Positions 52,491-52,886 of a DNA stretch of 64,000 bases are shown here, piece after piece (positions within the stretch are counted from its first letter, which is position 1; every line of letters starts with the position of its first letter). The stretch is taken from the IMG/VR virus record IMGVR_UViG_3300036766_002289, positions 124,001 through 188,000 of that record, one strand, 5' to 3'. The translations under genes were made by a program, and so were the position numbers. The notes under the pieces were generated by a model. The model was not told where the DNA came from. It saw nothing but the letters and a program-made list of their open reading frames with translations, and ran no database searches.

Positions 52491-52523
52491 AACACATGTG
52501 TATCTATGCTTTAAGGAGAAAAA

Positions 52524-52886
52524 ATGGACGAGTTTTTGTAGAACGATGAATATTATGTTTATGTTTTTACGAGAGAGGATTTACCATCAATTACTGCTTT
52601 AGTGCAATCCTGCCATGCGAGCATGGAAGCAATACGTCATTACCCTCTTCCTGTTGAAGTTATTCCAAACCTTGTTGTTTTTGGGATTTCAAATGAGAAA
52701 AAACTTATTTGTGTGCAAGAGAAATTAAATACTTTAGGTGTTAAATTTAGAACATTTGTTGAACCAGATCGTGACAACGAGATAACAGCACTGGCAACGG
52801 AACCAGTAAATGGTGAAGTTAGAAAGATTTTTAAGAAATATCAATTACTTAAACTAAGGAGTCAGCATGAAACTATCAAGTTATAA
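52524..52886 (+). CDS. Pth2-like peptidyl-tRNA hydrolase with an in-frame TAG at codon 6 (52539-52541)
   Basis: AAGGAG, then ATG GAC GAG TTT TTG TAG AAC GAT GAA TAT TAT GTT TAT GTT TTT ACG AGA GAG GAT TTA continuing in frame to VQSCHA...FVEPD...ITALATEP. Confidence 0.7.

Follow-up and report, generated by a model that had tools for sequence, protein, structure and literature searches.

A conserved early stop codon matched to a neighboring suppressor tRNA in a Pth2-like gene of a huge phage and more than a hundred other phages

Phage-encoded suppressor tRNAs are well documented in the stop-codon recoding of gut and huge phages, where the expression of phage genes carrying in-frame stops becomes conditional on the phage's own translation factors (Ivanova 2014; Borges et al., preprint 10.1101/2021.08.26.457843). 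In those phages 26-71% of the genes, mostly late and lysis genes, carry in-frame stops, whereas the code-change genes themselves, which comprise a tRNA, a release factor and a synthetase, are in the standard code. However, suppressor tRNAs are also found in jumbo phages that use the standard code, such as XacN1, Atu_ph07 and GAP32, and the published descriptions of these report no target: the XacN1 paper states that no target of its CUA suppressors could be identified, and the Atu_ph07 paper only speculates. A second possible precedent is the autoregulation of RF2 (prfB), in which an early in-frame UGA, at codon 26, appears to act as a sensor that is bypassed when a +1 frameshift beats termination by a release factor, with RF2 itself acting at that site. 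The third is the bar minigenes of phage lambda, probably free-standing elements with a strong Shine-Dalgarno (SD) sequence, an ATG, one or a few sense codons and a stop, which are linked to peptidyl-tRNA drop-off and appear to act by sequestering tRNA in pth-defective hosts. Here we describe a small gene, predicted to encode a protein with the fold of the archaeal/eukaryotic peptidyl-tRNA hydrolase 2 (Pth2, PF01981), that carries an in-frame TAG at codon 6 in a phage that has not recoded TAG, and show that a comparable arrangement is widespread. It differs from the recoded phages in that the stop sits at a fixed N-terminal position in one specific small gene (sometimes also in its HD-like neighbor), in many loci physically next to the tRNA, and from prfB in that the proposed alternative event is decoding by a dedicated phage tRNA in the zero frame at codon 3-7. 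We found no prior description of such a module in the open-access PMC and bioRxiv literature searched, and the Borges et al. preprint does not mention any hydrolase or Pth.

Anatomy of the gene and the predicted fold of its product

The analyzed window is a 64-kb stretch of the 390-kb IMG/VR contig UViG_3300036766_002289. Within it, an SD sequence AAGGAG (52513-52518, + strand) lies 5 nt upstream of an ATG (52524-52526), which is followed by GAC GAG TTT TTG, giving a five-codon leader MDEFL (52524-52538), and a TAG (52539-52541) with an adenine immediately after it. The frame then continues without interruption as NDEYYVYVFTREDLPSITAL-V(GTG 52602)-QSCHA up to the TAA at 52884-52886, so that the body of the gene (52542-52886) comprises 114 codons plus the TAA. 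No ATG, GTG or TTG occurs in frame between the TAG and GTG 52602, which lies 20 codons downstream of the TAG. Among all TAGs in the window this is the only one followed at once by a strong in-frame coding signal with no start codon for 20 codons. The possibility of a frameshift on the T-run GAG TTT TTG TAG was rejected because the Pth2 frame is the zero frame, and a shift on TTT TTG would lead into a 34-codon dead-end frame. We found no significant RNA structure around the TAG (z = -0.85), and promoter-like sites occur only at chance level. A tRNA with anticodon CUA, which we term the amber-suppressor tRNA, is encoded on the same strand at 46512-46586 according to ARAGORN, whose ends can be off by one base, and at 46513-46585 according to Rfam (RF00005, 66.6 bits). 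It is a class I tRNA of 73 nt that starts 6-7 nt after the stop of an IF1-like gene. A nearest-neighbor comparison with 148 typed phage tRNAs gave no consistent amino-acid identity for the suppressor tRNAs, and the pyrrolysine label assigned by ARAGORN is nominal; the tRNA fits the general tRNA model over its full length and, though no dedicated search was made, no pyl genes appeared among the Pfam hits listed for 20 kb around the gene.

The window protein matches the Pfam PTH2 model only weakly (E = 7.7e-4, 20.1 bits against a cut-off of 23) and is not recognized by NCBIfam Pth2 models. A word-indexed protein search recovered only 2 relatives and a megablast of 6 kb around the gene against cultured phages found nothing, but an exhaustive profile search revealed a large family with 2591 representatives at E <= 1e-3 and 885 at E <= 1e-10. 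Of 35 aligned members 30 hit PF01981 at E <= 0.01, and the family profile recovered Pth2 chains in the PDB (24bt_A, E = 6e-7; 2zv3, E = 4e-3). An AlphaFold model built on the alignment has a pLDDT of 93.5, and its 12 best Foldseek matches in the PDB are all Pth2/Bit1 (E 9e-6 to 2e-4, TM 0.65-0.71). The family shares with canonical Pth2 (e.g. PDB: 1xty, 2zv3, 3erj, 1q7s) the motifs RxDL, (A/V)QxxHA and LTAxAxxP. However, the loop that reads DLxMxxGK in canonical enzymes is two residues shorter and reads DLsxPQQ, with the alignments placing Gln where these enzymes have Gly-Lys, and the DAG motif is replaced by EPD. Further, phage GAP32 carries a canonical ungated PTH2 in addition to its member of this family. 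Hence, the family is a divergent Pth2-fold paralog, its description as a peptidyl-tRNA hydrolase is an assumption, and its substrate may not be ordinary peptidyl-tRNA.

Residues 5-11 of the piece downstream of the TAG (YVYVFTR, encoded at 52554-52574) form strand-1 of the model, which supports the claim of the sequence-only reading that the strand preceding QxxH is Pth2 strand-1. Relatives with a plain start begin only three residues before this strand: L002 (loci recovered in this study are denoted by L and a number) reads MKRYMYVAVRQDI and phage K64-1 reads MCTEARRYVYILV. Gene callers placed the start at GTG 52602 (94 aa) or, in public databases, at ATG 52623 (87 aa), and GAP32_397 is annotated in the same manner. 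These starts would delete strand-1 and half of helix-1 from a compact α/β fold, the deleted segment YVYVFTREDL is among the best conserved in the family, and no SD precedes 52602, in contrast to the perfect AAGGAG preceding ATG 52524. It is therefore very improbable that the functional protein starts at either of these positions with a meaningless upstream frame.

Conservation of the early stop and its match to the suppressor tRNA anticodon

An early stop of this kind could represent a private nonsense mutation, a pseudogene or a sequencing or assembly error. In favor of this, there is a single in-frame stop near the 5' end, a homing-endonuclease-like gene is inserted immediately upstream on the other strand (51435-52490) and could have disturbed the 5' end, and the syntenic relatives L009/L010 have a divergent N-terminus. 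However, even without raw read data, the TAG and its surroundings are identical over 141 nt in the IMG/VR contig, a 590-kb JGI contig and an independently made Logan assembly of SRR11714510, and the downstream frame is intact, with strong coding signal and conserved motifs. Moreover, the database protein P0142, from a 346-kb contig (L008), is called from MQSAHA, but its DNA reads TTTAAGGAGAAAAA followed by ATG CTG TAG, three codons (GAA CAC AGA) and then strand-1 (TTC ATC TAT GTT onward), and the SD string preceding it, TTTAAGGAGAAAAAATG, is identical to that in the window. To extend this comparison we scanned viral, metagenome and MAG contigs with a degenerate DNA motif, EPDx5TAxATEP. This motif samples only the part of the family that keeps it, and 17 of its 154 hits in the viral and metagenome scans and several more among the 26 MAG-contig hits were unrelated sequences. 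Of 130 relatives with a usable core, 117 (about 90%), at about 40% protein identity, display an SD, an ATG, 1-5 codons, an in-frame stop and then strand-1. We refer to this stop as the gate: it is TAG in 112 and TGA in 5, never TAA, and lies 17-30 codons upstream of the conserved VQxxHA, with a leader of mostly 2, 4 or 6 codons and, in most cases, no canonical start between the stop and strand-1. At 60% identity the set forms 60 clusters, of which 44 have TAG gates only, 5 have TGA gates, 2 mix TAG-gated and ungated members and 11 have no gate called. About 12 loci carry two TAGs in the leader (e.g. one after MRPFQ and a second after TKEEYG, preceding DQHFYVY), and six unique genes carry a second, internal TAG. 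This conservation, together with the stop-anticodon covariation described below, makes a private mutation, pseudogene or error very unlikely.

Among unique genes with a suppressor tRNA in view, the TAG gate occurs with tRNA-CUA 57 times and with tRNA-UCA 0 times, whereas the TGA gate occurs with tRNA-UCA 4 times and with tRNA-CUA 0 times (Fisher p = 1.9e-6). On a maximum-likelihood tree the TGA-gated genes fall in at least two, probably three, places, each beside TAG-gated sisters (L011 with L012/L062, support 98/88; L050 with L130, support 96/82; L143/L082/L040 together), indicating that gate and anticodon have switched together more than once. The genes also avoid their own gate codon as terminator: TGA-gated genes end in TAA in 5 of 5 cases, while TAG-gated genes end in TGA in 63 of 96 and in TAG in only 8 of 96 (p = 0.006). 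All these tRNAs are on the same strand as the gene, often 25-500 nt away, with 23 lying within 100 nt upstream and a second mode 330-510 nt downstream. Of 39 unique gated loci with at least 1 kb of flank on both sides, 20 have the tRNA within 1 kb and 7 more within 6 kb, but 12 show no suppressor tRNA in view. In the window the tRNA is 6 kb from the gene rather than adjacent, and in L008/L199 no tRNA lies within 10 kb. Some ungated members (L002, L098, XacN1) also sit near tRNA-CUA. Hence, the tRNA-enzyme link is broader than the gate, and gating is dispensable in some lineages.

The local context of the gate is non-random, with a purine following the stop in 96 of 101 distinct contexts, against 55% purines at first codon positions in these ORFs, Met, Phe or Tyr at position -2 in 70 of 101, and Thr at position -1 in 46 of 101, the commonest form being ATG-ACN-TAG. 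A purine after UAG is probably the classical favorable context for amber suppression, and the window, with F-L-TAG-A, fits both this and the family pattern of an aromatic residue or Met at -2. The mini-ORF resembles start-stop and minigene elements, and the codon after the stop is Val or Ile in 62 of 101 contexts, being GTG in a few (e.g. L011), which raises the alternative that ribosomes terminate at the gate and re-initiate just downstream without the suppressor tRNA. However, re-initiation should not depend on which stop codon is used, yet TAA is never used and the choice of TAG or TGA tracks the anticodon of the neighboring tRNA. In the window the codons after the TAG (AAC GAT GAA TAT TAT GTT onward) include no known initiator, and the double-TAG variants are hard to explain in this manner. 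Re-initiation is thus very unlikely as a general explanation, though it remains possible as a minor route where GTG follows the stop.

Ordinary genome-wide reassignment of TAG would also account for a suppressor tRNA and an in-frame TAG. Consistent with this, recoded phages with suppressor tRNAs are well documented, a few relatives have a second internal TAG (L018/L029/L034/L080/L152), and in GAP32, BF and L014 the neighboring HD-like gene has one TAG too. However, in the standard code the window is 92% coding and its 100 ORFs end in TAA (52), TGA (31) and TAG (17). Treating TAG as sense lengthens long-ORF coverage no more than treating TGA as sense, in the window and in all 45 loci of 9 kb or more, including 49 kb of GAP32, although this measure is crude for GC-rich loci and covers only the flanks rather than whole genomes. 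The TAG is also position-specific, at codons 2-7, whereas the conserved glutamines of the family are ordinary CAA/CAG codons, and cultured carriers such as GAP32 are annotated and grow as standard-code phages. Hence, within the flanks examined, genome-wide recoding is contradicted and we regard it as very unlikely.

Cultured carriers, an HD-like partner and functional implications

A tblastn search against GenBank phages recovered the family in 36 records, almost all of them jumbo phages, and the gate is present at the DNA level in five. In Cronobacter phage GAP32 the gene reads ATG GCA CAA TAG, the CDS GAP32_397 is annotated from an internal start, and a "Sup-tRNA" with anticodon CTA lies 3 kb downstream. 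In Serratia phage BF the gated gene (MTH-TAG) is not annotated. Acinetobacter phage ME3 has MT-TAG, with tRNA-CTA 430 nt upstream, and Ralstonia phage RsoM2USA has ML-TAG. Salmonella phage Arash also has ML-TAG, and a tRNA 1 kb downstream, annotated as Phe, is read by ARAGORN as having anticodon CTA. In contrast, K64-1/RaK2 are ungated and XacN1 has an ungated version of the domain fused behind an HD-like domain. An HD-like protein of about 175 aa accompanies the gene in 28 loci, and one such protein (P0023) hits Pfam HD. It overlaps downstream in ME3, Arash, GAP32, BF and L014, is directly upstream in L002 and is fused in XacN1. In GAP32, BF, L014/L015 and L060 it has its own single in-frame TAG. 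The window has no HD-like homolog, and its downstream 154-aa gene is not related to this partner.

The above observations strongly support, by comparison, the proposal of the sequence-only reading that the hydrolase-like protein is made only when the suppressor tRNA out-competes RF1 at an N-terminal TAG. We accordingly propose that the locus is one copy of a conserved phage module, in which ribosomes initiate at ATG 52524 and either terminate at TAG 52539 via RF1, giving a wasted pentapeptide, or accept the phage tRNA-CUA and continue into the 114-residue enzyme, such that the amount of enzyme reports the activity of the suppressor tRNA relative to the release factor. Read-through is inferred from sequence rather than measured, and we place the probability of this explanation at roughly 0.8. 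The double-TAG variants would make the response steeper.

The function of the enzyme is a matter of inference, but the altered loop, the co-existence with a canonical PTH2 and the HD-like partner point to a specialized tRNA 3'-end or ester hydrolase, and our best guess is that it hydrolyzes an ester-linked (peptidyl-, N-blocked aminoacyl- or aminoacyl-) tRNA species tied to suppressor activity. It might tentatively be a feed-forward clean-up of by-products of suppression that is made only when suppression is on. The RF2-like loop suggested by the sequence-only reading, here as negative feedback through deacylation or recycling of the suppressor itself, is somewhat more doubtful; nothing shows that the product acts back on the gate, and its idea that drop-off from the minigene could generate peptidyl-tRNA is compatible with the ATG-NNN-TAG form but remains a hypothesis. 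The remaining weight lies with other roles, for example counter-defense repair of tRNA ends. More speculatively, the tRNA and the gated enzyme, often with the HD-like phosphohydrolase, could form a self-contained translational homeostat or sensor, with the enzyme deacylating or releasing the suppressor tRNA so that read-through is held at a set level, as a tRNA-based counterpart of RF2 autoregulation. Alternatively, the suppressor tRNA might exist mainly as a probe of the host's termination and tRNA-charging state that licenses synthesis of tRNA-end repair enzymes. Though both are less likely than not, in either case the long-unexplained suppressor tRNAs of standard-code jumbo phages would be regulatory parts rather than steps towards a new genetic code.

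These results also expose a systematic annotation error, as the gene is truncated or missing in GenBank records and protein databases because gene callers stop at the gate. The gate, with its naturally optimized context, may be of practical interest as a compact, portable suppressor-dependent ON switch. Many standard-code jumbo and huge phages carry amber or opal suppressor tRNAs of unknown purpose, and the gated gene supplies a conserved, physically linked target whose stop codon co-evolves with the tRNA anticodon. This turns the vague idea of a step towards recoding into a defined two- or three-part circuit that exists in cultured phages of tractable hosts.

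An HD-like neighbor of the gated gene and affected annotations

Examination of the loci around the gated Pth2-like gene revealed an HD-like protein of about 175 aa (YHDCGKP...FPxHA...AEMFGGxxSxSFKxK) as a recurrent neighbor or fusion partner in 28 loci, including those of the cultured phages GAP32 (locus L165:2827-3363), Serratia BF (L166:2827-3363), ME3 (L196:4306-4866), Arash (L198:4311-4844) and XacN1 (L167:1964-2500), as well as two further loci from our collection of relatives (L014:11961-12518 and L002:5462-5992). In GAP32, BF, L014/L015 and L060 (the latter two designations again denoting loci of relatives) this HD-like gene carries its own single in-frame TAG at codon ~35-54, which is why GAP32 is annotated with three small ORFs in this region. 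Public annotations of the gated gene itself are likewise affected: 1) in GAP32 it is called from an internal start (GAP32_397, L165:2594-2827); 2) in Serratia BF the gene (L166:2489-2812) is not annotated; 3) in Arash (L198:4172-4324 and 5310-5384) gp84c is a 50-aa fragment called 'peptidyl-tRNA hydrolase', and its CTA-anticodon tRNA is labeled tRNA-Phe.

Gene neighborhoods and further candidate read-through TAGs in the window

In the window, an IF1-like gene (Pfam eIF-1a; 46288-46506) ends 6-7 nt before the suppressor tRNA, and an EF-Tu domain-2-like ORF, recovered only as a weak hit, and an S24 peptidase-like ORF lie just upstream (45491-45862 and 44827-45120, respectively). An S24-like gene also neighbors the Pth2-like gene and tRNA-CTA in L005, the locus of another relative. 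Immediately upstream of the gated gene, a homing-endonuclease-like gene (51435-52490, minus strand), with treble-clef/DUF723 repeats and a match to the PHROG HNH endonuclease (E = 1e-53), is inserted divergently 33 nt from the ATG; its antisense strand holds a 340-codon ORF (51492-52514, plus strand) that is probably spurious. The closest syntenic relatives, L009/L010 (64% identity in the downstream 154-aa gene), lack this endonuclease-like gene. They have a Pth2-like gene with a divergent N-terminus (MIWKISIDNP...) and no obvious gate, with a TnpB/OrfB_IS605 gene nearby (L009/L010:2769-3321 and 3942-5030).

At 22140-23072 (plus strand) an HNH-endonuclease-like ORF ends at TAG 22797-99 and is followed in frame by an 86-codon ORF (GTG 22812, with no SD), with coding signal on both sides; this is a possible second read-through target, or two adjacent genes. 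At 1-1287 (minus strand) two in-frame ORFs of 210 and 218 codons, neither of which has Pfam or PHROG hits, are separated by a single TAG (655-657); this is another candidate for read-through. The window additionally contains two ADP-ribosylglycohydrolase-family genes (42747-43730 and 62416-63309).

Occurrence on bacterial MAG contigs and a sub-clade with two leader TAGs

The module combining tRNA-CTA with a TAG-gated gene also occurs on contigs binned as Planctomycetota and Acidobacteriota genomes (L170, L171, L173, L184, L186 and L188-L191), of which L170 is a 1.64-Mb Gemmataceae MAG contig. These are possible prophages or, alternatively, might offer hints to the hosts. Interestingly, a sub-clade of the family (L020, L037, L048, L053, L054, L077, L115, L164, L036, L100, L088 and L134) has two TAGs in the leader, for example in the form MRPFQ-TAG-TKEEYG-TAG-DQHFYVY, an arrangement that would make expression depend on the square of suppression efficiency.
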